The notes under the pieces: generated by a model
What the model was told of the DNA's origin: nothing
The model's input: only the letters and a program-made list of their open reading frames with translations
Databases searched by the model: none
NCBI RefSeq assembly: GCF_003918875.1
Contig: NW_025767677.1
Location: forward strand, 124,001 to 188,000
Length of the DNA stretch: 64,000 nucleotides
From: Haliotis rubra
Taxonomy: Eukaryota
Direction of reading: 5' to 3'
Shown here: positions 11,201 through 64,000 of the stretch, in pieces
Layout: each line of letters begins with the position of its first letter
Numbering within the stretch: position 1 is the stretch's first letter
Made by a program: the position numbers and the translations under genes

Positions 11201-12018
11201 TTGGTAAAATTAACCCAGTTGATGGCTCCATATTTACGGAGTGCTCTGTCCACTGCACACTAGCAAATTCCATGAGAAGATATCCTGAGGTCGGCAAGGT
11301 GCCGGCGACACTGAAATGAGGTCCTGAGATCGCAATGTACATCCTTAGAAGCACACAGTACCACTAACAGCTCGACAGACGTGACGGACAGACAGACCGA
11401 TCTGCACCTTCCAGCACACTGCCGTCTGTTTGGTGGTCGTTGCATGCATCGTTAAAGCTTTATGATCACCCACCGTCAATGGTGGTCCCCTGTACAATCC
11501 GTACAGTAATCCATACAGTAGAATCTGTACAGTGACTGTACAGTCAGTACATACACTAAACACAAACGAGCAAAACAATTCAAACTCAAAATAGCTGCCT
11601 TTTCACATCCGGAACTGAACAGACCCAGTCTTTTTTAGTAGGTCCATGCAATTCCAGACAAATTAGAATAATAATAATAATAATCATGATAGTCATATCC
11701 GTGTTATGAATAAGCACATAAGCTTGCCACCAGCCACGCAGGTGTTCCTGCCAGCACACAGACAAGCAAAACCACTACATACACTACGCCCCTGGCATAC
11801 TGTTCCCATTAGTAGAGAAAAGTCACAAAATCTTCAGATTTTGGCTTGCAAAGAACATCTTGTTCAGTTTTTAATCCAATGCACATGGCAACTGTCACTT
11901 CATAAATAAGCCTCAGGAAAAAATCAGTGTGACGTTCAACAAGTCTATTGTCTTGAAAATTCGTAAAGGTGATAAACCATATAGGAAATGGTTCACAGAT
12001 TACATATCCAGGTAAAAC

Positions 12019-12423
12019 GTATATTCCAGTGTTTGTCGCAATCGGGTTGTACTCTATTCCGGGGGTATTCCGTAATCAGGTCTCTTCAAGCTTGCTCCAT
12101 ACCTCATGGCTGTGCTGCCAGAGAGAGCCTGAAGATCAGACTATGTATCAGGTATCATCCAAGTATATCCATAGGTTAAGCAGCACCCTGGGTATCCACT
12201 GGGTATTAGAATACCTCAAGTATCTGCTCATGGTACACCTGGGTATCCTTGGGTATCCTTGCCCTCATCTCCAAATGGTACTCCAGGTAATAGCTTGCTC
12301 CAATAAATAAATGTAATACTCCATTCTTCCTCCACAAATTTGAGCGTATTCTCCTGGTGTATTTCCTCTTTACTGCAAGCATATTCCTAGTAAGCTAATC
12401 CAGTATGGTGTCTATGTACTCCC
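12019..12423 (-). promoter_or_regulatory. GGA-N0-3-UAC motif cluster (proximal 3' UTR)
   Basis: 11 copies of plus-strand GTA(N0-3)TCC in about 400 bp immediately after the stop codon. Confidence 0.55.
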
Positions 12424-12500
12424 AAGCATACAGCAAGCATATTCAAGCATCCTCTTCCTCATCCATGGGGCACACAAGGCCTTTCTGCACGACGTTCTCC

Positions 12501-12632
12501 TCAGCCCACTGTAGTAATGATGATGAGAGCGTGAGCCAGATCCTGAATGTGTTCCACCAGACCTGTTGTGTTCCGGGCTACAGAGTCGTGCGAGAACTCA
12601 CAGGGTGGGAAGATGTGCACCACATAGGCAGG
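12501..12632 (-). CDS. spen: spen last coding exon (SPOC C-terminus and stop)
   Basis: Acceptor tttccag|CCT; PAYVVHIFPPCEFSH...HALIIITTVG*; TGA at 12503-12501. Confidence 0.96.
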   Translation of the reverse strand, partial: PAYVVHIFPPCEFSHDSVARNTTGLVEHIQDLAHALIIITTVG

Positions 12633-15624: not shown

Positions 15625-15656
<32 letters not shown>

Positions 15657-17767: not shown

Positions 17768-18068
17768 CTGAAAGAGAAAAGGCAAAAATTTGGATTAGAT
17801 TAAACACAAACTCCATGGCAACATTATCAGAATAATTTCTGAGGAAAGATAGACATGCATGTTTTGTGAATTGTTTGATCAGCATTCTAGAAGTTGGGGA
17901 GTCAAAAACTTTATGGATGACAACTTCTTGTTTATTGCATAGAGCGACATATCGATGTAGGTTCTTACACCGTTATCAAGATAAAAGTGTTTTGTGAGTC
18001 ATATGTTGGTATTGATAAGACCTGAGATAAGAAATTAGTACATGTACATTGAACTCCGAACATCTTAC

Positions 18069-21000: not shown

Positions 21001-24000
21001 TTGCACTTACATCTTTATGAATGTCCTTAGGAACATCTTTGTTGAAATCTTTCAGAATGTCTTTTGACTTGTTATCATTGTTAGGACTCTTTAGTTTGTT
21101 TTTGCTAAACAGAGGTCCATCTTTCTTTTTCGATTCTCCAAAAGGCTTGCATTCAAACTTCTCTAGAATTGAATCCTGTGAGGCATCAAAGTTGTATGTC
21201 TTTTTAGCCAACTCTGAAATGTCTGGTGCATCCAGTCTTGAAGATTTCTGTCCAAAGCTTGAAGAGAGGGGTTCTCGTTTCTCAGTGTTATTCACTGTTG
21301 GATGGTCATCTATTTCCATCTTGCTATCCTTGCCTTTCCCATCCTTCTTTTTCTTCTTCTTCTTTGGTTTCTTTGCCTTAGGAGGTACAAGATCTTTATC
21401 AGAGTCCTCCTCTTGACTAGAATGTTTATCAAATGAGAAAGTCTCCGACTGAACTGGTGGCTCAACTTTGGTTTCTTTGTTTCCAAATTCAGATAATTTA
21501 TGCATTTCAGAGAAAATATTCTTTTCAGGGTCCCTCACAATAGACGTGAATAAGACAGGTGATGGCTTACTAATTTCAGGTTCAATGTCTGAAGGTTCTT
21601 TGTTAGGTTTCTTTGTTTTTGCCTTGGACTTCTTCTCCTTTGCATCAATCTTTGGCGGTTTGACTTTAGAATCTTCATCTGTTTCATCAGGCCTTGAATC
21701 GAATTTGGGAGCAGACGTTTTTGGTTCTTCTTCAGCTGATTCACTTTTGGGCTTTTGCTTGTCGTCTTGTTTGGTATCAGGTTTGCTTTTCGTTGGCTTG
21801 TCTTCAACCTTTGACTCGATTTACTTTTTGAGCCAGCAGAATCTGGCTTCAGTTCACACTTATCTACTTTAGCAGTCTTCAGTTCTTCAGGTTTCACATC
21901 TACCTTGTTTTCAGTTTTCTTATGTTTTGACAACTTGTCTTCAGATTTATTCTTTGACTTCTTTTCTTCTTTACCCTCAGTCATATGGCTATCAGGTTTT
22001 TCTTCTGTCTTGAAGGTCTTGTGTTCTTTAGAAATCTTCTGTTTTTCAATCTTACTTTTCTTCTTTTCTTTCTCCTCCAATTTCTTTTCCCGTATTTCTT
22101 CCACCTTCTTTTCCCGTATTTCTTCCACCTTCTTTTCTCGTGTTTCTTCAGACTTCTTTTCCCTTGTTTCTTCAGATTTCTTTTCCCGTGATTCTTCCAA
22201 TTTCTTTTCCCTCATTTCTTCCAATTTCTTTTCCCTCATTTCTTCCAATTTCTTTTCCCTCATTTCTTCCAATTTCTTTTCCCTCATTTCTTCAGTTTTC
22301 TTCTCCTTTAGCTCATCAACCTTTTCCTCCCTGAACTCTTTTAGTTCATCCATCTTTCTCTCCTTAATCTCCTCTGCCCGTTTTTCCTTCACTTCTTCTG
22401 CTTTCTTTGCATAAGCCTCCATCTGACGAAGTTCTGCTTCTCCTTTCCTTATCAAATCCTCTAGCTGAAATACCTCTTCCTCTTCTTCCTCAATGTTTGG
22501 TTTATCAGCATCTTTCTTCTTTGACTTGGATGCAGAACATGGTTCCTTGTCCTTCGGCTTCTTCTTCTTCGGCCTTTTGGACTTGTCATTTTTCCCCAGG
22601 TCTACATTTTTCTTTTCTCCTTCATCCATTGTCTCTGGTTCAGTAATGCTCATTTCAGATGGGAAAGCATCAACAAACGATCTGTCCTCTAGCCTCTTCT
22701 CAACTTTGACTTCTTCAAAGTCATCATTATCATCATCACTCCAATTCTCCCTTGACTTCCTTTTCTTAGTTGGCTTCTTGCTTTCAGGCTTAATGATTGG
22801 CTCATCATCGTTTAGAATATCCATATCATCATCTGAATCGGAAGATGATTCCAAAAACTTTCTTGCCTTTTTCTGCATGATTGTCTTAGATTTCTTCTTC
22901 CGTTTCTGTTTAATATATTCCTCAAGTTCATCAGAGGAAGAACTCTCAATAACCTGAGTCTTTTTCTTCCGCACTTTCTCTTTAGGAGGTTCAGGTTCTT
23001 CTTCCTCTGAGTTTTGTGTACCCGACATTCCACTCTCATCATCAGAGTTGAAGGAACTGCAATCACTGTCATCACCTCTGTTGGACTTGGATTTCTTCTT
23101 CCGACTTTTCTGAAACCGGTCAAAGTATTTTCGAACATCTTCGGTTTCATTTTCCTTACTTTTCTCAATAGACCGTCTCTTGACTTTATCATACATTGAC
23201 ACATATGGTTCAAAGTCATCGACAAGAAACTCAGCTAGCATCTTCCTCTCCGCTATGGCTGCTGCTTTCTTCTCCGCTGCCTTCCTCTCCCTCTCTTTCC
23301 TATCTTCCTTTTTCTCTTCCTTTTTTTCTTCTTTCTTCTCAGATTTCTCTTTTGTACTCCTAGATTCTGATCTGTCTCTGCTTCCTTCTGTCTTTTTATC
23401 ACTTTTCGATGAAGTCTTTGACGTCTTTTCTGCCTTATCCCCTTCTTTGACTTTCTTCTTCTGGTCCTTCTGATCTTTAGAGTCTTTAGGCACCTTGTCT
23501 TTGGTTGAAGAGGAAGAGGAGGAGGAGGACTTCTTGGACTCTTTGTGATCCTTGTTCCCTTTATCTTGAGATTTGGATGCTGACTTGTCAGACTTATTTT
23601 CACTTTGAGAAGAAGAGCTTTTAACTTTGTCAGGTTTTGTTTCCTTGCTCTTTACTTTATCTTTCTTCTCTGGTTTCCTCTCCTCAGTCTTCTTTCCTTC
23701 ATTTTTCTCTTCCATCTTCTTGTCATCCTTCTTTTCTTCTGCTCTCCTCTCGTCTGATTTTTTCTCTTCCTTCTTTTCCTCACATTTCTTTTCTTCAGCC
23801 TTCTTTTCTTCGGCCTTCTTTTCTTCAGCTTTCTTTTCTTCAGCTCTCTTGTCCTTGTCATGCTTCTTGTCCTCATGTCCTTTGTCTTTTGATTTGAATT
23901 TCTCAGAAGAGTGGTCTTTGCTGTCTTTCTTGTTCTCACTCTCTTTATGTTTGGTTTTGGTCTTCTCCCGATTTGCATTGTCAGCTTCTTTATGACTTTT

Positions 24001-27000
24001 GACCTTGGCACCAGAGTCATGTCGTATCTTGTCCTTGTGAGATGAGGATTCATGCTTCTTTTCTTCCCTGTGTTCTTTCTCCTGACTGTGTGACTTGGAA
24101 ACCTTTTTATCTGATGAAGATGCCTTGTGGTGGTGTTTGTCTTCACCATCTTTCTTTGAATCAGATTTCTCTTTGTGGCTAGAATGTTGGGAGTGACTGT
24201 CATGACTCTTGTGAACATTCTCTTTCTTCTTATCACTGGATGTTTCAGGTTTCTTTTCTGTCATCTCAAAAGATTTGCTTTGGGATGACAGTTTTGTGGA
24301 CTTTGATGACCTCTCATCACTTGACTTTGAACGCATCAAAACAGGTGGGAGTGAATGTCTGGTCTCTTTTTCTTCCTTTGGCTGTGAAGTTTCTTTCTTC
24401 AGCGGAGTTGAGTGTTGATCGGGATTGAGCTTAGCAACACTTGGAGCTTCCTTCTTAGTTTCCTGAGGAAGTACAACAGGACTAGTTATGGACTGGCTAC
24501 TGGTGGATGATGACGTCGAGTCCAATCTGGATGTGGTGGGAGTTCTGGAAGGTGAGGATGACTGGGTGTCCATGGGTTCTGTGTGATGGTTGGAGGACAT
24601 AACAGGTGTTTGTATTGTATCAGAAGGTCGCCTTTTCTGCACTGGAGCAGCCAGGTGATGTGTTTCTTTATTTGCTGTTGGGATGGATGTTGCTGTTGGA
24701 GATACTGATATAGTTCCAGTTGAGCTTGAGACAGGTTCGCTAACACTGTTTGGAGTACTGACAACAACTAAAGGTTGACTTGACTGTTGCTGAGATTCCC
24801 CTACAATGTTACTAGCGACAGAAGAAGCACTAGTAGAGATTTGCTTTTGTTGCTGCTTTGGAGTTTCTACAGGAAAAACACTCGGATGTTTGGGTGACTG
24901 GAACCCAGACATGAACCCTGAATGAGAGGAGGTGAATGTTTGAGATGATGCAGACATTTGGGTATTGATTGATGGTGACAACTGTTGGGTACTAACAGCT
25001 GAGGGAGAAAGATGAGGATGAACTGTTGAGGTAGATACTATCTGCTGCTGCTGCTGCTGTTGCTGATGAGGTGGCTGCACTGGTAATGATGGTACTGTGA
25101 AAGATGGTGTAGAATTGTGACTAGAAGTAGATTCCTTTAACTGTGCTGGTGTTTGAGGATGCGGTGCTGGCGGCATTGATGCTGGGAACTGCTGCAATGG
25201 AGGAGCATGCACTACCTGCTGATGAAGTGAATGGGATATAGAGGAAGGGGATTGGAATGAACTACTTGAACCATCAAAACTAAAGGGACCCATTATTCCT
25301 TGAAGAGCACTCATTGATGTTACTGGCATCTGTTTCACAGCAGCTTTTGTTGGGACCGGAATATATGTTTTGGGTGGGGAATTAACAAGTGGCACTTTCA
25401 CATCTGGTGGTTCATATTTCTTGTTAATCTGCTCAAGACGTTTAGAATCTTGATCAAGAATACTTTTACTCCGTCTGGACATCAACTGTTTCACAATGTC
25501 TGAGGGTTCAGGCTTCTTATCCTCTGAACCTTGGCTGAAACCAAGGCCCGGGGTAGCATCCTGCTTCTTTCTAATCCTGAACTTTGAATATAGTCCAGTC
25601 AGGGGTGAGGTCAGCGAGGAGGTGGATGTACTAGGAGTGAGAAGTGATGCTTCCAGAGGTTTGTTCATTACTGGCATGCTCATCTTCTCATCCAGGATTC
25701 GTATCCTCTCCTCAAGACTTAACTCTCCAGGAGTCTTGGGTTCTTCTGAACTACTATCCGAGAAAGAATCATCTATTTCAATAGCTGTTTCAATAGCAGC
25801 AGAGGAGGGACTTGTTTCCTCCTTTGCTGATAACATCACAGATGTAGAGTCCACAACACCTTCCACTTCGGACAGCCCCTTCTCCTGGGTAGATTCCTTA
25901 GCAGTAGTCTCGGGCATTTCATACAGTAATGGTCTAGTCCAGGCTTTTGTTGAAAGATTAATATCCTTGGGGCTAAGTTCAGACACATCATCAGCATGGT
26001 GACTCACAGATATATCCTCAAAAGCCTTGGGGCTTTTCTGGTACTCCGGACTATTACGAATCACAAAAGTCAACTGCTCTTCTTTTGGCGAGTTCGTAGA
26101 ACTATCAGCAGGCACAACATGAGGAGAGATCTCCTTGCCGATAGCAGATGATGATATCCTGTCATCATAAGAATGTTGATGTCTCTTAATCCGAGGATCT
26201 TCTAAAGTGGTATCCGACTCCTCTTTTATAATAATGGGCAGACTGAGAGACTTCTTTTCATGTCTCTCCACTGGCTCCAGAGGAGTATGAATGTCATGTC
26301 GGGGAGATTTGGACAAAGGGAAATACCCTGAATAACCAACATCCAATTTCGTTAGTCCGTCATGTAATTTCACATTCTTACTATAAGAATCTATACTTAA
26401 ATCCTTCTTTTTCAAACCTTTCTCAGTCATTTCATCATCACTACTGATATATTTATCGTTCCGTCGATATGTACGCACTTTTGAATTTATATCACCATCT
26501 TTCACATCAAATTTCCGGCGTTTAGCCTGTTGCCGGAAACTTGACCCAGTGTCTGTTGGAGATTCAGCTTGGTGGTCCTCACCTTCACTCTCATCCAACT
26601 TAGTCACTATCACAGGAAGGGCTGACGAAGGTGACTTTTTCCTTCGTGCAATATCATCAGCAGTCACTTTTGTCTCAAGTATCCGTAATTTCTCCATCTG
26701 TTTGCGGTAACTTTTAGTGCTGTCAATTTTCTTAATTTCTTCAGCAAGTTCAAGTTTCTTTTCCTCTAGCTTACCACTCTGAAGACTCTTAATTAGCTGT
26801 CCTTTAGTTCCATCGAATCTTCTTGCCACAACATTACGCACATCCTCACTGAGGTTAGGATCAGCATCAGAGGTGTCCTCTAACTGCTGAATCTTCTGCA
26901 GTAGTAAAGCCTTTTTACTATGCAGTTCTAATAAGTCAGATTCACCTAAGGAACCATTTTCTGATTCTGGGTGGCTGTTGGTTGAACCAGGACTCCCATG

Positions 27001-27877
27001 AATCTGTGCTTCAATGAATGCTTTTGGTATTAAACGTGTCTTTTCACCTTTTTCAAGTCTCATCTTTTCCGCTAGGAAAGCTTTCGTCACACTGATTTTT
27101 GAGGCTGTTGATTTTAAAGTCGCACTATGACTTTCACTTCGTTCCAATTTCTTGGAATTTTTGGCGAGGTCTTTGCTAAGCATGGCTTCCTCATAAGAAC
27201 GTTTCCGAGAAGACATTTTCTCGGGCGGTTTCACAATTTCGGATTGAGGTTTCCCTGTAGTCACTGACACAACACTCCATGGTTGACTTTTAGTAGACAC
27301 AGAATCATCCATAGACACATGCCGATGAATTGAATTACTCCGTTCTAAACGGGATTTCCGTGAATAGTCATCAGGATAATATCGGTACATAGGTGGTTCT
27401 TCCTCAGTTGGTGTAGGAGGAGTATACGACCGATTTGAAAGTTCATCATCTTTTCTCCGCGTCGGACTTCTGGTGGGACTGTGGAATGATACTGGAGACT
27501 GACTCCTACTTTGGTCACTGTGAAGATCAAAGTCTCTGTGTTTTTCGAGATCAAACCGATCTCTGGAATAACTTTTATCGTCGGACCTACTCCGGTACCG
27601 ACTTTCTGAGCGGTAAGAGTTCCGATCACTGCCTGGGCTATCACTCCGCCCATAAAGGTCCAATCTATCCTTACTCCTATCATCATAAGAGTCCAGTGAT
27701 AAGTCCCGAGATGACCGCCGTGACGGTCTCTCTTCATAACGTTCATCTGTTCGTCTCGGGCTACTGTGGCCCCGTTCTCTCTGTCTCTGGCTGTGGCCAT
27801 ATTCCCTGAGTTCTTGTTCATAGGAATCTTCTGCCTTGAAGTATTCACCACTGCTTTGGGAAAACCCATCGGTTGAC
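18069..27877 (-). CDS. spen: spen giant coding exon 11 (9809 nt; 4 apparent frameshifts)
   Basis: Acceptor ctgtttcag|G, donor G|gtaaga. Contains the SPEN-type motifs SLEERIRILDEK, SILDQDSKRLEQI, SMYDKVKRRS and AALAVASIL. Covered by five overlapping ORFs (21535-27975, 19643-21538, 19132-19791, 18335-19135, 17965-18702). Confidence 0.88.
22075..22300 (-). repeat. Coding 24-bp tandem repeat (EKKLEEMR)n
   Basis: About 9 near-identical octapeptide units in the giant exon. Confidence 0.9.
23775..23845 (-). repeat. Coding 15-bp repeat (AEEKK)n
   Basis: Visible in both the translation and the DNA. Confidence 0.85.
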
Positions 27878-28255
27878 CTGAAACAGGGAAACCACATTAG
27901 AAACGGAAGAATAATGGGGATATATTTCTTTATAAGTGTACAAGTATCAAAGCAGATGTCTCCATTTGTTTGCACCTCCTGACATCATTGTAATTAGTAT
28001 TATTACATATGCTGTTTTCATTGACAACAAAAAAACAAACAAAAATAAAGGGGGGGGGGTTTAAGGGTAGGGTAGGGGAGTTAGCCGCAAAAAAGGTATG
28101 GAAGTATTGACCTGAAACTTGAATCGAAATTTCAGCAAACGGGCTGTTAGGAAACTCAATATGTAGGCAACGTAGATATAAATGGGGTACAGGGCACCTA
28201 ATCTCTCACATATATACAATGGAGGATGAATACATGGCCACTTTTAGTCACACAC

Positions 28256-38061: not shown

Positions 38062-38990
38062 AACACCAGGGTCATCAATTTCTCTTACTATAATACCAGG
38101 GTCATCAGTTCCACTGACTATAATACCAGGGTCATCGTTCTACTGATTTAAGTACCAGGGTCATCAGTTCCACTGACTATAATACCAGGGTCATCAGTTC
38201 TACTGACTATAATAGCAGGGTCATCGTTCTACTGACTATAATACCAGGGCCATCAGTTCTACTGACTATAATACCAGGGTCATCGTTCTACTGACTATAA
38301 TACCAGGGCCATCAGTTCTACTGACTATAATACCAGGGTCATCAGTTCCACTGACTATAATACCAGGGCCATCAGTTCTACTGACTATAATACCAGGGCC
38401 ATCAGTTCTACTGACTATAATACCAGGGTCATCAGTTTCACTTACTATAATACCAGGGCCATCAGTTCCACTTACTATAATACCAGGGCCATCAGTTCCA
38501 CTTACTATAACACCAGGGTCACCAGTTCTACTGACTATAATACCAGGGCCATCAGTTCTACTGACTATAATACCAGGGCCATCAGTTCTACTGACTATAA
38601 TACCAGGGCCATCAGTTCCACTGACTATAATACCAGGGCCATCAGTTCCACTTACTATAATACCAGGGCCATCAGTTCTACTGACTATAATACCAGGGTC
38701 ATCAGTTCCACTGACTATAATAGCAGGGCCATCAGTTCCACTTACTATAATACCAGGGTCATCAGTTCCACTGACTATAATACAAGGGCCATCAGTTCCA
38801 CTTACTATAATACAAGGGTCATCAGTTCCACTGACTATAATAATACCAGGGCCATCACTTCCACTGACTATAATACCAGGGCCATCAGTTCCACTTACTA
38901 TAATACCACTGTCATCAGATAAACTGATTAAAGTATTCGGGTCATCAGTTCCACTTACTATAACACCAAGGTCATCAGTTCCACTGACAA
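38062..38990. repeat. 30-bp minisatellite (about 30 units)
   Basis: Unit ataccagggccatcagttctactgactata, with a few 29- and 33-bp variants. Confidence 0.97.
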
Positions 38991-41900
38991 GGGCTATTTT
39001 GGTTGAAAATGTCACAGAAAATGATGCATCTGAAACCCTGCAGTGTGACAGAGCTTGATTGTAGACCCAGCTCTCGGAATAAGCTCTACAGAGACCATAA
39101 TACATGTACCTGGAAACTCTAGTCTGCACTGTACTACCTCCATCACACGTTCTACCAACCATACAACCGGGGTAATCAGTTCCATACACTTCAGTACCTT
39201 TGCACCAGGTTCCACTGACAGCAGTACCTTTGAACTTGAGAACTGAATAAATGTAACCTAGGGATTTCATCAATATATCCTGTATTGAAAAAATTCATCA
39301 ATACTGCTTTCTACCCACTGCAAGACATTCAATGTATGGATTTGTGACACGTCTGTGCACTGCTTGATATTTACAGAAACTAATAGATCCTTCTTATCTA
39401 TAGATGGCCGATACAACATAAACAGGCTGTGAGAAAATTATAATGAGGTATGAACTCTTAATACCCAGAGTGAAGCTTAGGATTGTTTTTATAAAATGTC
39501 ATTTGTTCTGGAAATAACTTCAAAAATAATTTTACACATGCACAAAGCTGATAACATTTGGTTCCTCCTAGAATCATACTATTTCCCTTTCTGCTTGGCC
39601 AGTACTGGAATAGCATAGCTCCAAATGAAGCAAGTTTTTACAGTTTACAGATTCAGGTTCTGAAACTCTCATCAAACGGAGATTCCTTCTCAATGTTACT
39701 TATTTCTTTCAAAGTTATATATGTTCAGAGATTAGGCATAAACATCACTTTGACTTTATGATCCCTAACAAAATCTATTGAATCTAATGCCATAAATGTC
39801 ATATCTGTACCTCTAACCCAAATCTTCTGGTCGTAAAATCATTAACAACTGTAACATAAACAGGCAAAGCTTTCACCACTTAAATGTTTGAACAACAACT
39901 TCACTAGATGTCCATCATTCAAACCCTATCTGATAAATCTTTAGACATTTAACAAGCTGTTTCCACACCAGAACCGGTCTAGCAATGGTCTTGACATTTC
40001 TCTTGTCCAAAAACCCCCATGTACTAAAGTGTACTTTCATAGCAGCAGGACCAGAAGCCTTTTTACTGGGCCATAATCAATCCTGGTGGTGTGATCCTGG
40101 TGTCTGTGCCCCTCCCCCCTTCCCCTGGGGTAGGATAAAGGTGGGCAAGTGATGGGGGTCTCCCTGATGACCAGGATTTACACAAGGGATTTAGCACAAG
40201 GGTCACAGTGTGAATAATGGGAATTCTTCTCCATAGGGGATCTAATAAAGGGCTGTGATATCAACAGCAGACTGAACACAAGGTCCACTGGGTGGTATCA
40301 GTGCTGAATGCATCAAAAGGTTTGGTGATCAATTGCATTGCCTTGGTGAAGTATCGGAGCAGAAGCAATGCCGACGTCACTGGGCACATAATATGCGCTG
40401 GATCTGAAGTCGTGATCAAAGCTTCACTATGGATTTACTCTTCAGTTTGGCTGCAGAACTGACATTTTTGAGTCAGCCAAAATAGCAACTTTAATCAAGA
40501 TGGTTCAGTCATTATTCTGCCATTGGGGGAAATCAAGGGAGCATCACACACCAGGGAGCTTACACAACCACAGTCATTAATCTTTGGAAAGTATTTCGGG
40601 AAAACATGAAGGCAATGACTCTTCTCTCTGGACAGGAATAGTCTGATACTACGCTGAACAGTTCCTAGACTCACCTATTAGCACCTATTAGGAGGAACAA
40701 TATTTTTGTGCTATTCTCAACTGAACTATTCTCAAATGTTGCAGGTCACAAAGGATAGCAAGACACATGATGTTGCAGATGGGTTTAGCATCCTAATCCA
40801 ACAGAAATGCAGAACAGATCTCCATCTCAGAGCTTGATCAATTTGAGATCGATTAGAGGAATAATCAGTTCTACACCATATTTGACTTCAGACAGCAGTT
40901 TATGATACAAGTTTCACAATACCAGATGAGCAGACCTATATATTCCACTTAATTAGATGACACAACTGACAATGTGTGTATGCATGTGTTGTACTTGTAA
41001 TAAATTTTGCTCCAAAATGTAAACTCCATCGTATATACAATTTATACATTGCAAATGCACTAACAGTAACAATTCAATTCAAAGGGACAGAGAATCTTCA
41101 TAAATCAAGGCATTGCTCTACATAAGTCTCCAGTAATGAACTTCCATTAGCTGGACATGGCAATTTCTCATGGTGTCAAGATGACGTGATTAATGAATTT
41201 CTGACAAGTTGAAAACAGGCCAGGTGCTGACCCTTTCTCAAAATGGTTGCCTCTGGAGGGTGACACTATTCCTGAAACAACATTACTACAACCTGGAGAA
41301 GACTAAAGCTTTAACCAGTCTTATGTGATGTGCTGTTATTTCAACTGACAACACCATAAGCAAACATCATTTCAATCCAACATTTACCTAAGCAAGGTTC
41401 ATACCAGTTAGTTGAGTCTGGACAAAAGTGCAGAAAACAGAGCACACATTAATTCACTAAAATTATAATCCTTCTACTAACAACAAATACACTTTCTCCA
41501 TTTATTCCTTTTCCTCCCAAAGAGGCCCTTCTAAGCACGTATCCATATCAGACATGTTTCCAAAGTAAACTCAGTTTGATTATCATCCCTGAAAGCAATT
41601 CTTCCAAATTAAAGCCAACAGCTACTTCAAATTGTCATCAACCATCTTGATTTAAACATTTCATAAGCAAATTTCTCATCCACACCTTCCCTCAGTATCC
41701 AAACATGAATAGTGAAAAGATCCATTAGCCTGTCTGCTTGTCTCATTGTGATCCTAACAGCCAGCAGATGTGGACTGAATCATTACATCATAAGTGTTTC
41801 ACTAAGTTACCTCATCAGACAGCAGCCAGCCTTGGGGCAAGGGACTGCAGGGCTTGCTGACCAAAGGTCAAGGCCATGTAAGGAGGAATTACAGCTCTTC

Positions 41901-51614: not shown

Positions 51615-54600
51615 GACACGAGCGAAGGCAATCAAATTACCTGGTGGAAAGTCTCGCCTCAAGACATTCTTCGTGATTAGTGGCTATGTCAATTCTGAAT
51701 TTGTTCCTTCCACAATAGTTTCTCTCACACCAAATGGAAACCTTGTGACGAGTATAACAAGGGGGACTTTTTGAAGTCCTTGACTATCATCAGTTTCAGT
51801 TATTACCACTAACAGAAACTGATGATTTACATCATAATACAACTGGCCATCAACACCACTGGTTGCATATTCATTCTAAAGGAGGAACTCACATCATACA
51901 CTATCAGTTCGACAAGATTGAGGTCGAATCTGGACAACACCAGGTAGGACTGTGACAATACACTTCTGTGGATCAAACTGATTCTCAACAGTACTGTAAC
52001 AATATCATACGCAATAATGTCCAAGATGGGAAAAGACTTCCAACTAAAAACTATCTTGCAGATTTGAGACAGTGACTGAAACAGTGGCTTGACAGTGGAC
52101 ATGATTTCACGATACCATCCTCACATCACTGCAGGGGAAAAAAACAAACAAATTTATTGCACAAAACAACTTCAAGGGGCAGGGAACAAAATCTGTTCTA
52201 CAAATATACCATATTTACTTAACACCACAAGAAACTGCATAAATGATCAGTCGATAACATGGGATTGCTAATGTTCAATATATATGCAGAATCAATTGCC
52301 GTGTTTTGGGAAGCTAATCTTCTGTTAAAGATAACATTCACAATTTTGACAGTGACAAACAGATACGCAATCCAAGCCACTGATTTTAATTCATCACAGT
52401 TTCGCGATACACTGAGCATTCAATGCAATGTTACTACCAAAACAACAGAGTAAAATGTGATTCCTGTGTCATGAAACATCCATCAGCAAATACAACCATA
52501 GCAACAAAGGGGGAAATATACCACAGTCCATTTCATCAATGGTTATTTCCTCAAGGCCTCAACCACAATCAATTTGAAACTGGTCACAACAAAGGACACA
52601 TCAACCACTCTCCCGAACCCACCGAACAGAGCTGCCAAATCCAACAGTGGTATTACCCAGGCTTACCAACCACAAAACAACCTATAGTCATCCCGATTAA
52701 TCCAAAAGCTGAACCCCTTTAATCACAAGGTAATATACTTCACAATATCCACCTATTGTTCTCCTGAACAGACTTCTACGTGTGATTACGGCCTGACAAA
52801 GCAGTTTTCTACCCTGTGGGAATCAACTGTGAAAGTTTCTGCATCAACAAAGATGTGAGGTAACACTTGTTACATCATAGGCTGGATAAGTCCTGCAATT
52901 GTGTAATCATGCCAGCTTTGGCACAAAGCCAAGTCTATACTTCACGTGGTAAATAATTAATCTGCACAGTCATGCAGTCAATAGAGTCACATTATCATCA
53001 TAACTAACCACACCTGCAGTCTCGTATTCACAGCCTGTCACACAATCAATTTGAAAGCTGCTTGTACTCCATAAAAGAGCAACATGCGGACTTGAATGAC
53101 ACTTTTTTTGACAAATTAAAATTCATGAGGTTTATAGCCTTCACAATAAATCATCTAGCCTATTACGAACATTCACTTAATGCATTTTCACCGGCAACAT
53201 AAAGCAAAAACGAGCAAAGCTTTTCATGACAAATTAATTTAAACCATTCTTTTCAATTTTGTAAGCCTTCTTTTTGTACTTGGTAACCTGTGTACATCTG
53301 ACTGAGGAAAAGGATTAAGAATTATCGTAATAATGATTATAAAAAATGCTGACATGGTGAACCCGTTCAAATATAGACTTAACTGCAGATTTAGCTTCAT
53401 TCTGCATCAATTTATGTCATTTCCTTAACATTCAACTTAAATGGCTGAATAGAATAACTGACACTACCAGCATTTTGGCATTATCATACAAAGTAATTTT
53501 TGACCCCATTTTAACCTGAAAACAAACATTTGGGAAAAAGTAATCAGTTGAATAAGACAGGTGCTGGTTGTGTATTGGTTTTTAAATTTTGAAATGTGCA
53601 AGATATGAATATGGTATCATCACATCCACCACGTAGTAGACAATTCTCACGCAAAATTATATTGAAAATTCAGTCTTTAACATTAGGCAGGGTTTCAGCT
53701 TGACTTACAACTTTTAATTTAATTAACTGAAGAAAATATGTGGGACCTGCCAAGTAAGCTATCAATTGGGCGTATAGTACTAAAATACTACGTTAATAAC
53801 ATGAACTGTATATTTCCTGTGAAGAATCTGGAACAGGACACATCGTGTTTCTGCATCCTTTCAGGCTTTCATTTCACATTTCAGTATCAAAACCTGATCT
53901 GAACAGTATCCTTCTGTTCAACAGAAATTGACAACATTGCCCGAGATAAAGAGCTGACAATCCCAAAAAATGTTTTCCTCAACAAGGAAGTTTCCCAATT
54001 TCTAAGAAATAGATCTTCCATGAACATGTTATAGTACACTGAACGCAGAAGACATCTTATCATCCTACAGAGCTATCATGCGCACACAACGTGAAGTGTT
54101 GTATTGTAATGCAGCATTCTTTTCAACTGAGCAGACTAGACAGGCTTTTGAGCAAACACCTTCACCTTGCTTATCTTCTGGGAGAGTTCAATGTTGAAAC
54201 AAGTGACTGTATAACATCAAGTTGGGAGGAAAGTAGGCTAAAACTTAAATATTAGCAAACCTAACTCACCAACCATACAAGCAGATGTCTGTAAGGGATG
54301 TAAGGATATCATAAGTCAATGCAGTGTTGCTTCCCAGGTATATAAAGAAGGTTGTGCGTTTCATGTATTATAACTTTTTTTTGCCAAAGTAAGGGGAGCG
54401 TGGCTGTGTAATATTGTCTGTTGCAAATATGCAGACAATATGGCATTTTTAGTCAGGACACATATATGTCGCAAAAGTCAATCTGGCCTAATTTGAACAA
54501 GCTACTTCATCATACATTTCAGTCCTTGTGTACTGTGTTTAGGGGTGAAATGGTACGCTCTTACCATGGTACAGTACATATTGCTGTACAAGGCCTTCAT

Positions 54601-56399
54601 TTCGGTCCGTTTCAGTTCAGTATATGAAATATTATCATAATGCAGAAAATCGACAAGAGCCAAACCATGCACTGTTTAATAACATGAAAAAAACAAAACC
54701 ATAATCTTTGTTATATTGATTTAATAAAATTGTCATTTTATGACTAGACAGAAATGATGGTACAAAAACCCAAATACCGAATCTTTGTATTGCATTACGG
54801 AATAATACAGCAGTTCTACTAATACCGCAGTATACCGTTTCACCCCTAACTGTATTTATACTTTTGTAAGTTTATTTATTTCTAACCAGTAACAAATAAC
54901 ACTTGAGCCTTGCCCACCCCATGGGCAGGAAAACTTCCTTGTGTGTATTGTTTGTGTGTGAATGTGAACTATTCATGTGACATAAATACAGCTGTGTCAG
55001 TGATTCCTGTCTGCGTGTACCAACAAAAATGACCTTGACACTTCAGCAAGGTCACCATCTCCTTGCTGCCACCATCCCTCCATTTCCACAGCTCAAACAA
55101 CAAAATCTTTGTCAATTCATATTTGAAAATGTTTATTTCAAAAAATCTCAAACATATAAATAATCCAAACATTTGTAAATTGTGCATAAAATGCCCTGGA
55201 AAAAAGTAACAATAAATTCAACAAATAACAAAGTGTGAAAAAAAACCCCACATCCTTAAAGCCTTGACATTAACACCTTGAAGTCAATTCTGATTACAGA
55301 AAAGAAACAAAAACTCACTTCACAGAGGAGAACAAGGCCAAACATAGAGCATTTCCTGTTAGTAGAGCAAAGCCAGGGAAAGCACTTGTGGTTATTTCCA
55401 ACACATTTTGTGCTTGGTATTCAAAATTCTTGGCCAAAGTCCAGGAGAACCCAGAGGAATCCTGGGCAAGGCGCATCATTTCCTAAATGTCATAGCACAA
55501 GGACAGGCACGTAGCAAACTTGCATAAATAACTCAAACAAACAAAGCTGCATTTTCAAAATGGTTGCTAAGCACATCTGAAATTATTCAAGCTAGTCATC
55601 TCCACACAGCAATCCATTAAGATCTAAAGGTTGGCTGTTCGAGTGTCAGCCCAGGAACCTCTTTGTGGCTAAGCAACAAGCCAACAGGCCTGACATGTCA
55701 AAGAGGCACTTGCAATGGTGGATACTTCAGAAACATGACTTAATATTTGAACTCCTCCGTGAAGCCCAATACAATGAGACATTTTTCTATCCCTCACATG
55801 TATTTTTCCCTTTTTGATATTATTTACCTCCATTACAATCTTTCAAAATTTCTGAAAAGGGTTCATTAATTCTCTTTTGACAATTACATTTCCCAATAGA
55901 CTGAAAGTATCTTACTTTGAAATGGAACTATTCACTAATCAAGACAATTTCTCCACTTAGCCTCTCATCCAAATTTTCTTCAAAATGATGCAATTTGTCT
56001 TATAAGCTGACAGTGACACAAGCTGAAATATTATCTGTTCTTCTGGGCCTAATTTAAGTCTTCAGTCAAAAACCAATATTTGATCTGCAATGTAAATGTC
56101 ATGGCTCTTCTGCTAGTTTTGTAAACATTTCAGTTCTTAATTCACATTGCCTCAAGCTTCAAATAAACATAAAATTGAACAAAATTGCAAAACCAAAAGC
56201 ACTTTTTCCTTCTTGATGGTGATCTGTGTTGTTCTTGGTCTGTGGTTGAAGCACTGGCAAACGGCAACCATCAGACAACAGTTGCCAGAAAAGGAAGCAG
56301 ACGTCTCTCAACCAGTTGCTGACTTGGGCTACAGCTTGATGTCAGGTCAAATCTGTGGACAAAATGGCGGCAACCATATCCAGTCTTGAGCATGGTCAT

Positions 56400-57040
56400 C
56401 AGGTATCCATTGGCATCACATACATAGTATCCATCAAAGAACACACAGGCAGTACAATCCATTTGGGTATTTAATCCAAGGGGTGGTATCCACAGCAAGT
56501 ACTCCATCAGTGGGCTTTCCATGCCTACCAAGCATGCCTGGCTTTCACCAGGCTACTTCGGGCAAACACGATGTCTGTAGACAAGTACTCCAAGTAATCC
56601 ACGTCTGCTAGTATGTCCGTTGGCCTGTCCATCCATGTGTGCATAAGTGCAACTCTTGACTGCATAGTAATCCATGAGATATGTAAAATCCATGATGAGA
56701 TCTTTAATAGTGTACTCCAGGTAAACAAATCCAAGCGATGGGTAAATATCCGTTTTCCGCTGCTAAACAACGTCAAATGTGTAAATCCAAAATAAAAGAG
56801 CGAGAAAAAAGTACAGTTTCAACAACCGCGCACGCAAATATCAATACTCCAAACACAACAGTTAACTGCATGGTATTTCTGAAAGTGTGTAAAGACAGTA
56901 AAGAGTGATAATCTTAGAGAAGGTGATATATCCATCGTAATGATCCAGTGAGCTGTATACTCCAGGGTAGCAACTCCAATTGAGAGCAGGGACTAAAACA
57001 AAAATCCACGACGGGCAAGTACACTCGAGGTACTCCAATA
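56400..57040 (-). promoter_or_regulatory. UGGA-N0-3-UAC motif cluster (intron 2)
   Basis: 13 copies of plus-strand GTA(N0-3)TCCA in about 640 bp. The cluster is directly visible; its function is inferred. Confidence 0.6.
56525..56762 (-). CDS. Candidate alternative terminal or poison exon after RRM1
   Basis: Long polypyrimidine tract, TTGAC and tttag|cag NAGNAG acceptor; in frame with exon 2 for about 78 codons to TAG. Confidence 0.3.
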
Positions 57041-57763
57041 GAATATCCAAAAGAGTACAATGTTCCACATAAGAGGGGAGCAAAATAAAAGCTTGTCACA
57101 TGATGTGAAATAGCAACTAAACCACACAATTGAAGTTTTACTTTACACGCACAGCACAAAACAAAACCGACCAAGGCAAAGGCTTATGTAGGTGTAGTGT
57201 TCCAAAACAAAATCCAAAATGGCAGTTTGTATAAATAGTCCAAGTTGAAGGGCAATGCTCCAAAGATGGCCAGGGTTGTTTCCCTGTCCAGCAACGGAAA
57301 AGTAACTAAATGCTGAATTGAACTCAAAGTCTAGAAAACTGTCTCAATTTTGTTGCACCTGGAAATCAGCTCATAGTTGTATGGTTTAATTTCTACAACT
57401 GTGTGATCACCCAGTTGCATAGATGCAGGTGTCAATGGCATCTACTGTGGTCACGTGACAATCCAAAATGGCGTGCAGCTACAGTGTCTAGTACAATGTG
57501 AACGACTGTTAATGGTTTCTGTGAACACTGCAGAAGATACGCAAGGGGTAAGTCTTGTACTAAGTCATTGTTCTACATATGGCAATTGGTTTAGTGAGGT
57601 GTTGGATGTTTGGCAGAAAGAGATAGACTACTACAGTACATGTCAGACGAGTGGACCATTCACCCGGATTTCTCCCACCGGGAGCTGGACGACAGATTGA
57701 CGCCATCCCCACGATAGAAACACCACCATCAACCAACATCGGCAGGCAGAAATGTCAACTTAC

Positions 57764-58033
57764 CCCTTTGGCCAAGGGAATGATCCTGCTCCACGGGCAG
57801 CACTTCCAGTTGGTACATGAAATGTTCCGCGGTCGGGTTCATGAGTCCGTGTGACAATGCTTCCTGTTGTAGATCCCTCACAGTATTCCGTTCTCAGGGA
57901 ACAGTTCTCAAGTAAGTTCTCTGCTCCGTGGGCCTTGGACGCCGACTTGATGTCCATAAACGCCACGGTGGCCGCTGGGCCTCCATCACTCTCCTTGTTC
58001 AGGTGGAGTTTTACACTCTGGATCTTACCATAT
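57764..58033 (-). CDS. spen: spen coding exon 2 (RRM1 body)
   Basis: Acceptor ctatttcag|A, donor GG|gtaagt; 270 nt, phase 2/2; YGKIQSVKLH...AATVAFMDIKSASKAH matches SPEN RRM1. Confidence 0.93.
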
Positions 58034-61000
58034 CTGAAATAGGAATAAAGGTCAAGGTCAACAAAGGGACAGGACAAGAAACTATCTGCTTTAAACAATA
58101 TATTTCTCTGAAATTCAAAAGAGTTGTGATAGACATTAAAATATTCAAAGATAGACTTTTTTAAAAATTATTTGCTTCATTCCTGAAAATCAGATGAAGA
58201 ACATGAAAAGACACGTTTGATCAAACTGGATGGAAAACAAGACAACATAATTTTATGCTTTCAAACACTTTCATGTTAAAGTACAAACAAAAAGATCTAT
58301 CTTAGGGGCAGACCATTTGAATTTAATGGAAAGTGGTATGCTTGGATTGTTTGTTATAAATAATGTTCCTGAAAACAAATTCTTCACTTTAGAAAAAAGC
58401 CTGTTTAAAATTCTCCCACAACCCCTGCAAGGGATATAAACTGATAGGTCTTAACAGAATACGTGTTTCTGGCCTAAATCCTTAATAGCAAAATGGGTTA
58501 CCATGAACAAGCCATGAACATTTTATCCAACTATTACCAACATACTTCCATTGATTTCCTCTAGTTTTAGGACAAATCTATTGATCCTGTACTTCAGCAT
58601 CCTCCCATAACAGTGCGACAAGCATTCAGACAGTAATATCAATTTCAGAACATGTTGAATGTCAACAGGCCCTAATGTGTCCAGTGGGTGGTACTGGGTT
58701 TCATGTTTTTCAGTGCGCTACTGAATAAGGTTAGTAATGTATACCCAAACACTGCCATGTTGGGAACTCAGGGTATTACATTTGGTTATGAAAGGTTCAA
58801 ATAGGCAGATAGTAATCTCATGATTTCCATGTTTCTGTGGATGTATTGGATTGGGTGTCCCTTGTGATGAGCCACCAGACACACTATGTCTACAAGAGTC
58901 TGGAACAGAGGCAATATGAAACAATGAGAGAGATAGAGAGACTGGCCAGTTCCAAGTTCCTGTATTATGTGCTTAGGAGTGTAACGTAGGGTCTTTACAG
59001 ATAAGCTGGCTGTGAAAAATATTCTCATGTTATTTATCAGATTAAATGGAGACTGGGCATTTATTCCAAACTTGAATCCTCCAAAAACATATTAACTGAA
59101 ACACTTGCGCACAATGACAAAATCATCCTTGCTTGCATAACAAGGTGAAATAGTAACAATAGAATATACACATGACCCCAAACTCAGAAACATCCTGTAA
59201 AGAAATAGATAAATCTTAGAGCTGATGTATTTTACCTTCCAAATTCAAAGTTTGTACTTGCTCACACTCTTATAAGAATAATTGTTGCCAATTCCAGTCT
59301 CAGTGCCAAAGTTACAGTTTGAAAAACACAAACTGAATTCAGAAGAATAGTTTTCAAACATTTTGAAATGCAAATTCATTCCCACAAATGCAGTATGAGT
59401 AAACATTATGAACATTTTAATCACTTCGAAAGCATGGTGTAAAAAAAACCCGCAAAGTAATGTGTTACTGTCAGTCTCCAAACTCTGTGTAATAGAAAAT
59501 TGACCAAAGATATCAGGTGATATTTCAGACCCTTCATTATTGATTGCCACACATAAATTAAATATGACTTGCAAACAAGCTGACACTTGGGTACAAGGTC
59601 TTATGCCCAGCAAACATCTGTGCAATTGATCCTAACATGCCCATATTGAAATATGGGTCTGACTGTTGGTTCATCAGCTGTGCGTGCGCTGTGTGACTTC
59701 ATCTTATATGTCCTTGACAGGAGGCAAGATACCAACAGCTGCAGCTTGAGATGACCTAACTATCAGAGCATGAAGCTGTCATTGGAAACTGATAACACAA
59801 CTTGAGAGCATTTATCATCAGTGTTGAACAACACCTGACACTGTAATGTAGGACAGTCATCTCTCTAGTACCACGAACTCGGCATCTATATTGAGTTGCA
59901 AATGGACATGTAACAAATTCAATCACCATGGAAACATATCTGCCTTGAGACAGACAGGACATACAGGAATTTATGCATTTATTCAAGCATGCACTTTCTG
60001 TGAACTCGAAAGTGGAGGACATTTCCAAATTTGATGCATCAGGAACACAAATTATGTCTGTTGCAAATCCCTCTGCAATTTGACTTGTACCATATGCTGC
60101 CATGTTTTTTTGCCATGAACTGACTTACCTTCTGTGTGCTCACAACTAAAAACACATTCAAAATGTTTGAATAGAAGGAAATGATATGGTGCTATTTGTC
60201 AAATCTGCACACACAAAATAGCTACAACACATGAAGTTTGTCCACTATTTGCTGTTCATTACAAAATATTCATGCCTTTAAATAGTTGAAAGTGTGTCGA
60301 CATTCGTTTCCTGTTGGCTTAATTGTCTCGTGGCAAGTAGTTTTGTGTTGGAACTGCCTGTTACAGCGTAAACTAATAACCCATTTCTATCTACTTCTTC
60401 ACATTGGTATGCCTGATGTAACACCTTCAGTATACTTTGTATAATATGTATATGCTGATCTTGTAAAAACATCCTTTTCCAGAACATTTTTGAAAATGCA
60501 GACTTAACCATTTCTCCATAAAAACCATCTTCCTCCCTTCACTGTATACACTTTTTGTGTACACTAATCAAGAGAAGTTAAGAACTACTCTTCCTTCATA
60601 TAACAAGCCATCTAAAATGCTACAATGTGAAATAATCGGCTGATCACAACTTCTTTTCAGTAGCATATTATTGTTTAATAAATTCAAAGAAATCTGCTGT
60701 GTACCCTGTCTAGCCATTAACATAATCACTGATAATAACACAACACGTATTCAACACCAATGCAGGGCACGATCATGTGATCAAACCATGGTGCAATTGG
60801 TTCAGCCTTCCAGACCTCTCTCCTATCAGCTATAACCCTATCCGTCAGTACAGCTTGGATTCACGTGTGATATCACTGCCTCGCTACCAGCCAAGCTAGC
60901 TGTTCAGCCCAACAACACAAACCAGCCAACAGGCTTGACTCCGCAGGAACAGCGAACCCCACCTAGGTGCACACCTGCTAGTAATTCCTATCTAGATAGT

Positions 61001-64000
61001 ACTCCGAGATGGTACCAGTGCACTTGCGTATCTGTGGCACTTGCTGGTGAATACCAGTAACATAAACATGTTTACATCACACCTCTACCCTTTGGCTGTG
61101 GAATGATGAATATATCTTGCTTTGTCTGATTTAGGCTTGCTCAGTTTACTCAAGGTGTTTTGCACCAGTCGCTCCTCCAGTGCATTTTGAGCATGAGAGG
61201 GTAATGAGTTTCTAAATAATAAAACATGTGTGGAAGGAAAGACTTTTAGTCAAAGCAGATGACTTTGGATTCTTTATAAAAACTCTACCAATTATCTCAA
61301 ATCAACTGCCTCATCTTCCAATTGCCAAACTGTTCCTTTTCAACCTATTATTCTAATTAATTACTCAAATATGGCTTTTATCATGTGTTCATCAAACAGA
61401 AACACCATCAAATTATAACTTCAAAGCGTAACATATTCACACAACACTGATTTATTAACCAAACGTTCAAGTATTTATTTACACGTTACTGTATTTGATC
61501 CAACAGGACCTATTTACCTCAAACCATACTACATATGAACACAGCCAGGCAATCTCTGTACAAGCATCATTACCCAGTCACCAAACAAGTTGGGTCATAA
61601 AGATGTCAATCGCTGACTTTCGAAATCCATCCACGGACTGTGGACTTCACCATGATAGATTTGCCAGTGTGGGTCACAGCAAACTCAAAACCTGCTCGGC
61701 TGGCAAAGAGCCAAGCTTTGAGTCACAATTGTCACTTCCCTTGGTGGTAAACACCCTGAGGGGAAGCGACCTGTTTACAGGATACAACCCTGTCCCCCAT
61801 TCTACTTCTGCTGCAGCTTCATTAGAGACACCTTCAGAATCTCCACCCTGCGTTATCACTGGGATAGGGCAAAGGTCAACTGGCAGCTAGCCAAGTTTCA
61901 AATAACACTCAAGTTCCCAGGGTGTGGGTCTATATAATCAAGCTGAACAACAGTCTACATGCTCAGGTCGCTGCGGAGAGACAGATAATGGACTGAGACT
62001 TGTTCAGGACTGGAGATGGGCCAATTACTGTGCACAGTATTACTTGCAATTGAGGCAAACATCATTAGCCCTGACTCACATTGAGAATATACCTTTTAGC
62101 ATCAAGATAAGATTTTGGTATTTTGGGTGATATTTCGTGTTTCTAGAAGGAATGTGCTGTTAAATATTTAGACTATTTCCATTTATCTTGACAAGCCATA
62201 ACCAAATGGTGAGTTCATTAGCTATGTACATAATAGTAGCTTCTGATTAGCCATCCATCCAAAGCCTTAGTCACAAAGTGTTTTTGTCTTCTGTAGTTTG
62301 CTACTACTGTTCATGATTAAAAATCTACTGAGATGATTCAAAAGAACAAGCAAGATTGGGCAAGTGTTTGGCACAGACATAAAATGCTGCGCTATCTTTA
62401 TGTAAATCTTGTTAATATTCAACACGCAAGGATGGGAATAAGGAATTGCATTCAAGCCAGGTTTCTCATGGTGTATCTTATCTGTAGCGTTGCATGTTCA
62501 AGCTATCTAAGAAGACTTTTTAAAATGTCACTGTTTTTGCTTCGTAACTCTGCATGGACATCCTTGATCATTTTCTCCAAAATTCTGCCAATGTCAAGAC
62601 AGTGGCACAAAAAATTCAAACTCACATGTTGTACCCTTGACAAAACCCTACCCAGGACTTCAGGGTGACACCTGATTCCTTTAACCACAAACCTACCCCA
62701 CAATCTCTACAGTTTATTTCAAGTGGCTGTATGAAGCTGATGCAACAGTGAGAATAAAACGAACACAATCCAAACCCCCAACTCCTTTCAAATTCCACAG
62801 ATAAGCCCATTAATATCAAATTCCTCACCTGCAAACATCATAACAGTTATATTTAGACGCAGCACACAAGAAAATGAGGAACATGTACCAGGAAGAATAT
62901 CAAGATTCCTAACCTACACTGAAGCATCTAATTTTCAGCCCTCACACAAACTACTGAAAAACATCTAAACGTCTAGGAAACTGACGTGAAAATCAATAGT
63001 GTTTTGTAAGAGAAGCTCTGTGGATTATTTTTATCTTGTTCATAGCCTGACTACTTGTTTCAGTGCTGTGTGGCTATACATTTCCCAAGCTTGACCTTTT
63101 CCTCGTAGTAGAAATCACCTGATCTCTTCACCAGGCACATCTGCCACGTTGCTCACCGACTCGGCTATGACTCATCGTACTATTATGGGCTATTTGTCAT
63201 AAGCAACACTACACGAGGTCATGTGATCTGTATCTATCTCACAGCTGGTTTCCGAGCAAACACTGATTAGATAGCACCCTGAAAATGGCATTTGCTACAC
63301 TTCAGTAATGAAATACATAGATCCGTATCCTTAATATTCTGTCCTAATTAAAATCGGTGTATGCCAGAGTTGCGAAATACGAACACAGCCCAAATGATAA
63401 GCCAGTAATTAAATGGTGTCTTGCTACCAATTGAGGTGTATTTCAGGGCTTCAGTGTCGTCTCACCAGCTGTCATTTCGTCAGCCAGTCAATAACATTTC
63501 AGCTGAAATCTATATAATATCAGCCACAATGTATGACACACCCATGTTCATATTTTCATTATGAGCTTTTCTCCTTGCCAAAACTTTGCCAATCAAATGT
63601 GTATCATTCCAGTAAACAATGTTTAGTTTCCAAGAGTGACAAGTTTGGAAGTCTGACTGCATTTGTGGAATTCTCATACTTAACAAGCTTTCTTTGTGAC
63701 AAACATTTCCAAGCTGAATGAGTGCAAGAAATATGAAACAGGCTGTTCAAAAACACTTACAAATTGGAAAATATTCTCTATAAATATCAACCTTTACCAT
63801 TAACATTACCGATACATTAAACATAATTAGGAATATTCCATACATTAGATAAAGTAAATATGCATGGATCCACAACCTCACAAGAGTGAAATTTCCTTTA
63901 AAGGAGAGAATGACAGCTTCAGAAAAAAAATATGTTGGATTATTTCAAAAGCCCCTGGAAAGTTTGTAAAACAGCAACAAGACAATCAGCATTTCAAAGT

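Follow-up and report, generated by a model that had tools for sequence, protein, structure and literature searches.

Sense-strand arrays of a YGGAU(U)A(C) word in the spen transcripts of Haliotis rubra: candidate elements of Spen autoregulation

Two arrays of a short word, YGGAU(U)A(C), which here takes the form UGGA-N0-3-UAC, are built into the transcripts of spen, a gene on the minus strand of the 64,000 nucleotides of Haliotis rubra DNA analysed here (hereafter, the window). One array lies past the donor of the homologue of human SPEN exon 2, and the other at the start of the canonical 3'UTR. They are very probably functional sense-strand RNA elements of these transcripts. We further propose, at somewhat less than even chance, that Spen or Nito/RBM15 binds them as part of an autoregulatory circuit; binding, binder identity and the direction of the feedback are inferred from the location of the arrays in the gene's own transcript, the overlap of their word with that of the Xist A-repeat, the conserved RRMs, and precedents in mouse and plants.

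The exon-2 homologue encodes the C-terminal part of RRM1, with YGKIQSVK as its first residues and ...WPKG as its last. When its donor is read in the frame of the exon, a split Gly codon is followed directly by TAA (57762-57760), so that the open reading frame ends immediately on read-through. Other exons of the same gene, encoding RRM3 and RRM4, matched PDB 4P6Q (RRM2-4 of human SPEN/Msx2-interacting protein; E = 8e-15 and 5e-26, respectively), and their RNA-contacting RNP segments are near-identical to those of human SPEN. A 2146-codon exon follows downstream of the RRM exons, and the spen stop codon lies at 12503-12501 on the minus strand. The intron after exon 2 is about 24 kb long; array 1 begins 470 nt and ends 1380 nt into it on the transcribed strand, that is, in its 5' part, where the earlier note had placed it. 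A minisatellite in the same intron (38266-39273, minus strand) gives an open frame of 335 codons that consists almost entirely of repeats of about 10 residues (GTDGPGIIVS) and forms a local peak of TCCA. Long glutamine (CAG/CAA) tracts were observed in the C-terminal spen exons (14510-15262 and 15489-15761, minus strand).

Table 1. Positions of the spen features in the window, counted from its first letter
Feature	Position	Strand	Basis or content
Array 2, opening the canonical spen 3'UTR	11950..12470	-	GGAUACC, UGGAGUAC, UGGAUAUAC, GGAAUAC and similar
Last spen coding exon, end of SPOC domain (PAYVVHIFPPCEF...IIITTVG)	12501..12630	-	six-frame reading; homologue P0018
Candidate poly(A) signal AAUAAA of the short isoform	55132..55137	-	sole sense-strand AAUAAA between the donor and 55000
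RNA contigs, extent on the window	55225..58034	-	2975 and 2961 nt, word depth about 23, one per run
Array 1, YGGA sites	56379..57290	- (sense)	34 YGGA, including 31 UGGA; contains all 13 strict copies
Donor GTAAGT of the intron after exon 2	57757..57762	-	sequence; exon/intron border GG/GTAAGT
spen exon, homologue of human SPEN exon 2	57763..58033	-	ORF, splice sites, alignment, homologues in 17 proteins

The earlier note, made from the letters of the window, had listed 13 starts of GTA(N0-3)TCCA, from 56403 to 57030, and all of them were recovered where it had placed them. Dinucleotide-preserving shuffles of 56400-57070, 2000 in all, contained 0.46 such copies on average and 3 at most, which bears out the claim that well under one was to be expected by chance. 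The extent given by that note is occupied by the array, whose actual span is slightly wider; a further comparison for array 1 gave 13 strict copies versus 0.66 in shuffles. The remainder of the 64-kb window contains 0.20 strict copies per 670 nt on the strand of the array motif and 0.14 on the opposite one, and 56400-57070 ranked first among all its 670-nt windows. An unbiased k-mer ranking identified TCCA (sense UGGA) as the core of the array (29 copies versus 5.5 expected); on that strand, TGGA would be expected 4 times and was absent. UGGA occurs 31 times on the spen strand of 56379-57290 and never on the other, in agreement with the proposed confinement to the transcribed strand.

The consensus of array 1 is UGGA(U/G)(U)UAC, and its copies mostly read UGGAU(U)UAC, UGGAGUAC or UGGAUAC; the copy at 56400-56409 reads CAGGTATCCA, or UGGAUACCUG in transcript form. 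GGAUAC and GGATTA were each found in 3 of the 34 copies. The copies are spaced by a median of 18 nt (range 4-137 nt), with many spacings near multiples of about 14 nt. Tandem Repeats Finder returned no array or period for this region, only a 9-nt x 2.2 scrap, and alignment to the rest of the window revealed no second copy, so the earlier statement that this is not a tandem repeat stands. Moreover, DNA word depth over array 1 (63 and 38 in two DNA runs) was flat and equal to that of the flanks. Array 1 is therefore single-copy DNA, which disposes of membership in a multicopy repeat family, an objection that the earlier note had raised against itself. An Rfam search of array 1 yielded no family, the sole match (E = 0.99) falling far under the gathering score, and its predicted fold showed no excess of structure over shuffles (z = +0.88). 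A coding role was rejected, as stops break all six frames over 56150-57300.

Two runs of the organism of the window, which we guessed to be RNA, were mapped to 53500-58500, the evidence being assembled contigs. In each run, a single spliced contig extends from the exon-2 acceptor (58034) through exon 2 and its donor, crosses the entire array 1 and ends at 55225-55238. At the start of the contigs, 170-178 nt fall outside 53500-58500 and were taken to be exon 1; a search for exon 1 in 58036-64000 gave no match. RNA depth was zero at 53500-54500, 55003-55169 and 58176-58500. The open frame of this read-through transcript ends at the donor TAA, so that RRM1 alone is encoded; as the contigs cross both donor and array, array 1 forms the 3'UTR of a short isoform limited to RRM1. 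The earlier note had described an intronic element: its position past the exon-2 donor holds, but it is not purely intronic, as it lies inside an expressed read-through transcript. The candidate AAUAAA at 55137 is located about 90 nt beyond the contig ends. A cassette "poison exon" inside array 1 (56525-56810) was also considered and rejected, since the contigs cross the array unbroken and the joints listed in the RNA runs all fall in the repeat at 54.5-54.8 kb, none among them inside array 1.

This repeat is a high-copy element at 54540-54848, 1.5 kb from the array, with a DNA word depth of about 20,000 (12,000-28,000) in two runs, compared with about 60 and 38 in its flanks; the value of about 20,000 was measured at 54502-54668. 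It showed many loose ends at 54540, 54804-54813 and 54848, and also appeared in contigs of the RNA runs.

The window contains a second array of the same type. When sense-strand GGA(N0-3)UAC was counted in 500-nt bins (mean 0.51 per bin), the highest count, 11, was obtained at 12001-12500 and the second highest, 9, at 56501-57000. In the first 1000 nt past the spen stop, 13 copies were counted on the sense strand, where shuffles gave 1.35, and the other strand had none; three copies in array 2 read GGAUAC. An orthologue of the last exon (L011) likewise exhibited an array 370-900 nt past the stop, with 11 YGGAU versus 2.3 expected and none on the other strand. This was the one match obtained by searching with the last exon for further 3'UTR orthologues; the penultimate exon gave none.

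To compare the intron across species, loci were gathered by a peptide search with exon 2, their contigs were fetched, and metagenome contigs were scanned with an exon alignment, giving about 45 loci. Two homologues without DNA (P0005 and P0011) were left out of the intron comparison, and masked N runs inside arrays (L010, 760-769; L046, 1433-1459) were excluded from the counts. Loci with a YGKIQSVK-type exon were array-positive in L002/L003, L008, L009, L010, L012, L013, L015, L025, L031 and L046. In loci of this type, a strand-specific YGGAU peak starts 50-700 nt past the GG/GTAAGT donor and spans 300-1400 nt; this donor was found, in the same phase, in L008, L009, L012, L013, L015, L025, L031 and L046. 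The strict UGGA(N0-3)UAC motif of the earlier note was enriched in the same intron of L008 (11 copies versus 0.59), L012 (6 versus 0.51), L013 (6 versus 0.40) and L009 (4 versus 0.44), counts that were reached in none of 1000 shuffles. The variant GGAU1-3A(C/U) was present in 14 copies, versus 1.3-1.8 expected, in L008, L025 and L031, the expectation in the last two being 1.3-1.6. Moreover, an unbiased count of 6-mers gave first place to TGGATT or GGATTA in the window and in L008, L012, L025 and L031, and a shared second place in L013. GGATTA was counted 12, 16, 8 and 8 times in L008, L012, L025 and L031, respectively, with sense/antisense counts of 16/1, 12/0, 8/0 and 8/0 across these introns. 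A pooled frequency matrix gave Y-G-G-A-U(67%)-U(59%)-A(49%), and hence a family consensus, YGGAU(U)A, that overlaps GGAUA.

Pairwise alignment of the orthologous introns revealed no two that share alignable sequence; the loci are thus independent cases in which motif density was kept. What is retained across species, as judged from these comparisons, is the word, its density, its strand and its place, rather than alignable sequence. In the 260 kb compared, each 500-nt window with at least 8 YGGAU corresponded to a sense-strand array in intron 2 or the 3'UTR. The cluster was thus found in orthologous introns of about ten other species, where its lack would by the earlier note's own standard have refuted the proposal; it is not pan-invertebrate. 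No array was observed in 10 kb of intron of L001, and no YGGAU array was found at any locus of a second exon class (F/YGRVQSVK...EHK...YY[ED]P; L014, L016-L030, L032-L038 and L041, a span within which L025 is listed as array-positive). At several second-class loci, the frame continues past the exon end, indicating that they are intronless there or that the contigs are transcript-derived. AATAAA was observed 250-850 nt after the array end in L008, L012, L013, L025 and L031, a frequency within chance for AT-rich introns; its presence behind arrays in five species would fit an intronic poly(A) site.

Taken together, these observations can be accommodated by the following mechanism. When the exon-2 donor is left unused, translation ends at the TAA of GTAAGT and array 1 serves as the 3'UTR of the short transcript; array 2 begins the 3'UTR of the full-length mRNA. 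The most likely role of both arrays is to offer a multi-RRM protein many single-stranded docking sites at once, and the lead candidate for this protein is Spen, or its paralogue Nito/RBM15, whose RRM module is homologous. Occupancy could then act by two routes: it may shift the choice between splicing of intron 2 and read-through to an intronic 3' end, as in intron 1 of FPA, or the bound transcript may be repressed or destabilised in cis.

Several published observations bear on Spen as the binder. Mouse Spen mRNA is bound by RRM2-4 of its own protein and increases in amount when Spen is lost (Carter et al. 2020, PMC7282817; also PMC10274648). In the Xist A-repeat, it is at the conserved GAUAC that SPEN binding alters SHAPE reactivity the most and that the SPEN CLIP signal is highest; at least four repeats are required (Button et al. 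2024, PMC10870365). As printed in the same paper, the human A-repeats read (C/U)GGAUA(C/U)CUG (GCGGAUACCUG, GUGGAUACCUG, ACGGAUAUCUG). The connection that the earlier note drew between the array word and the A-repeat thus has published backing, GAUAC being the main segment contacted by SPEN.

Like the A-repeat, the spen array is a multicopy, one-strand array in a nuclear transcript, some of its copies resemble the 3' conserved half of the A-repeat unit, YGGAUAC(C), and its copies are many, just as several are required in the A-repeat for high affinity. Nevertheless, the spen array does not qualify as an A-repeat. The spen array lacks the GCCCAUCGGGGC half, which forms the hairpin with the AUCG tetraloop: allowing up to 3 mismatches, this half matched 15 times in the 64 kb, versus 13.2 expected, and the one match that touches array 1 had 3 mismatches. 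Moreover, the A-repeat comprises 7.5-8.5 regular units of 24-26 nt with U-rich linkers, whereas spacing in the spen array is irregular, and the preferred spen word is UGGAUUA or UGGAGUAC rather than CGGAUACCUG, with GGAUAC in so few copies of array 1. The spen array also differs in being part of a protein-coding gene's own transcript, where a role in SPEN binding or silencing is putative. On this comparison, array 1 falls outside the A-repeat family but might work as an A-repeat-type multivalent platform does.

Two other members of the Spen family are controlled at an early intron. FPA of Arabidopsis autoregulates by polyadenylation in its own intron 1, which gives an RRM1-only product (PMC10111866, PMC8116057). 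Read-in to an early intron and a truncated, RRM1-only transcript are common to both cases, the spen version ending at the donor TAA; however, dependence on the protein has been demonstrated for FPA and is putative for spen read-through. No cis motif array was found described in the literature on FPA. In mouse, Spen intron 2 contains an m6A- and RBM15-marked region and a regulated alternative 5' splice site by the exon-2 donor (Wei et al. 2021, PMC8327914); use of this alternative donor gives a minor, less productive form, and was presented as autoregulation of the m6A machinery (PMC8327914). Gene, intron and place, directly past the exon-2 donor, are the same as for array 1. In contrast, the mouse element consists of m6A at DRACH (GGACU), whereas the spen arrays show no enrichment of GGAC, and the outcome here is read-through, not an alternative donor. 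A DRACH/m6A cluster was rejected for array 1, which contains 4 GGAC versus 2.1 expected and a single GGACU, and GGAC was absent from L008, L031, L009 and L002.

Clusters of self-binding motifs include the poly-U sites of Sxl, the binding region in the TDP-43 3'UTR, and those of Mbl/MBNL and PTB. The spen array resembles them in repeating a short word within an intron or 3'UTR of the gene that would encode its binder, and in its link to an unproductive isoform; for these proteins, however, the motif is known and binding has been shown, whereas the binder of the spen array is inferred. Of what defines an autoregulatory cis-element, we found the array in the protein's own transcript and its coupling to an alternative, non-productive isoform. 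Our literature search found no description of these spen arrays, and nothing on intronic polyadenylation of animal SPEN or on a GAUAC-type element in the SPEN gene.

Some findings weigh against Spen as the binder. The best-kept letters of the word are UGGAUU rather than GAUAC, and the arrays are missing in the YGRVQSVK class and in L001, although the Spen RRMs are conserved there. Furthermore, array 1 is no more structured than shuffles, whereas papers on SPEN stress stem-adjacent or bulged contexts (PMC7282817, PMC4041450), RNA recognition by SPEN having been described with emphasis on stem-loop context (Arieti et al. 2014, PMC4041450).

Another RNA-binding protein ranks close behind Spen and Nito/RBM15 as the binder, and remains a serious if less probable choice. 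The platform would then be real but would serve a protein of the hnRNP A/B or SR type, or another 3'UTR regulator, with spen as its target and isoform choice, stability, localisation or translation of spen under its control. The sequence evidence for a conserved sense-strand platform fits equally well, and both arrays stand in a 3'UTR context, the usual home of trans-acting regulators. In addition, SPEN has no established linear motif (PMC7282817, PMC4041450), no sequence motif being shared among Spen RRM2-4 targets (PMC7282817), and the best-kept UGGAUUA exceeds the GAUAC shared with the A-repeat. If such arrays are common in other genes, the binder need not be Spen. What favours Spen is that no known YGGAUUAY binder was found in the literature, that self-regulation is very common among RNA-binding proteins, and that mouse Spen binds its own mRNA (PMC7282817) while the strongest A-repeat contact of SPEN is the matching word (PMC10870365).

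The remaining explanations fared far less well. One of them is RNA-RNA pairing, which is highly improbable. Here UUACC, which looks like the start of U1 snRNA and could pair with GGUAA at the intron's own donor, would in its many copies hide the 5' splice site and so promote read-through. The word GGAUUACC is indeed the reverse complement of the 5' splice-site-like GGUAAUCC, the GG/GUAAGU donor is present in every array-bearing species and the read-through transcript exists; however, at most 5 base pairs are possible, the conserved letters are UGGAU and the CC on which pairing depends is poorly conserved, there is no donor that the 3'UTR array could hide, and no excess of predicted structure was observed. 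An equally poor candidate is a DNA element. Read on the opposite strand, GGATTA is TAATCC, to which K50 paired-type homeodomain factors (Otx, Pitx and Gsc type) bind, and the array would be a homotypic cluster of such sites in an intronic enhancer. In its favour, GGATTA ranks at or near the top of the 6-mers in L008, L012, L025 and L031. DNA sites need no orientation, yet that of GGATTA is near-uniform; besides, few of the window copies contain it, array 1 lies inside a stable transcript and the second array in a 3'UTR. It is scarcely credible that the arrays are without function, whether left behind by a minisatellite in decay or by a transposon, or produced by mutation biased to one strand: the spacings near multiples of 14 nt are such as a decayed short tandem repeat might leave, but no tandem array was detected, depth is that of single-copy DNA and not that of the true repeat nearby, the same word, place and strand recur in about ten species despite the lack of alignable intron sequence among them, and the word returns in the 3'UTR of two species. 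Seed sites for miRNAs were ruled out because the spacer inside the word varies from 0 to 3 nt.

RNA recognition by SPEN is unsettled, CLIP having given no sequence motif and in vitro work pointing to structure and a GAUAC bulge. An array that selection has maintained in the spen transcripts of deeply diverged animals, with a word that overlaps GGAUAC, is a testable candidate for a SPEN sequence code, and the spen arrays offer a natural substrate for binding studies. They are also a possible evolutionary source of the Xist A-repeat, besides or instead of the proposed retroviral origin. Most speculatively, and in our opinion unlikely to be right, YGGAU(U)AC could be the ancestral recognition word of the Spen RRMs, older than the protostome radiation and used for self-sensing at the exon-2 donor and in the 3'UTR; the GGAUAC half of Xist would then be a late copy, Xist would recruit SPEN by mimicking SPEN's own autoregulatory element, and feedback through an early-intron, RRM1-only transcript, as in FPA, would have a much deeper origin than is currently assumed. 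The read-through isoform found here also suggests that the dose of animal Spen may be set at the same early intron as in plant FPA and at the alternative donor of mouse intron 2; this is relevant to SPEN haploinsufficiency and to how a factor of dosage compensation is itself kept in dose. Should the binder be another protein, the arrays would still mark a conserved regulator of spen that we did not find described.

The region around array 1 was also compared among contigs. The contig of a relative exhibited 38 letter differences and no gaps over 56040-57583, compared with 52 differences and 41 gap letters over 54819-55974; this lower divergence suggests constraint on the array 1 region. Comparison of 53500-58500 with X16 and X19 gave a divergence of about 1.8% for contigs from the organism of the same name and of 2.5-4.5% for those from "organism D", with indels outside the array. 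The divergence among contigs in this intron points to a highly polymorphic species or a species complex. Finally, on the plus strand, array 1 is flanked by an exact 13-nt repeat, AATCCAAAATGGC, present twice (57211-57223 and 57460-57472), and by ACAAAATGGCGGCA, present once (56359-56372); their core, AAAATGGCGGC, is one that we take to be YY1/Pho-site-like.
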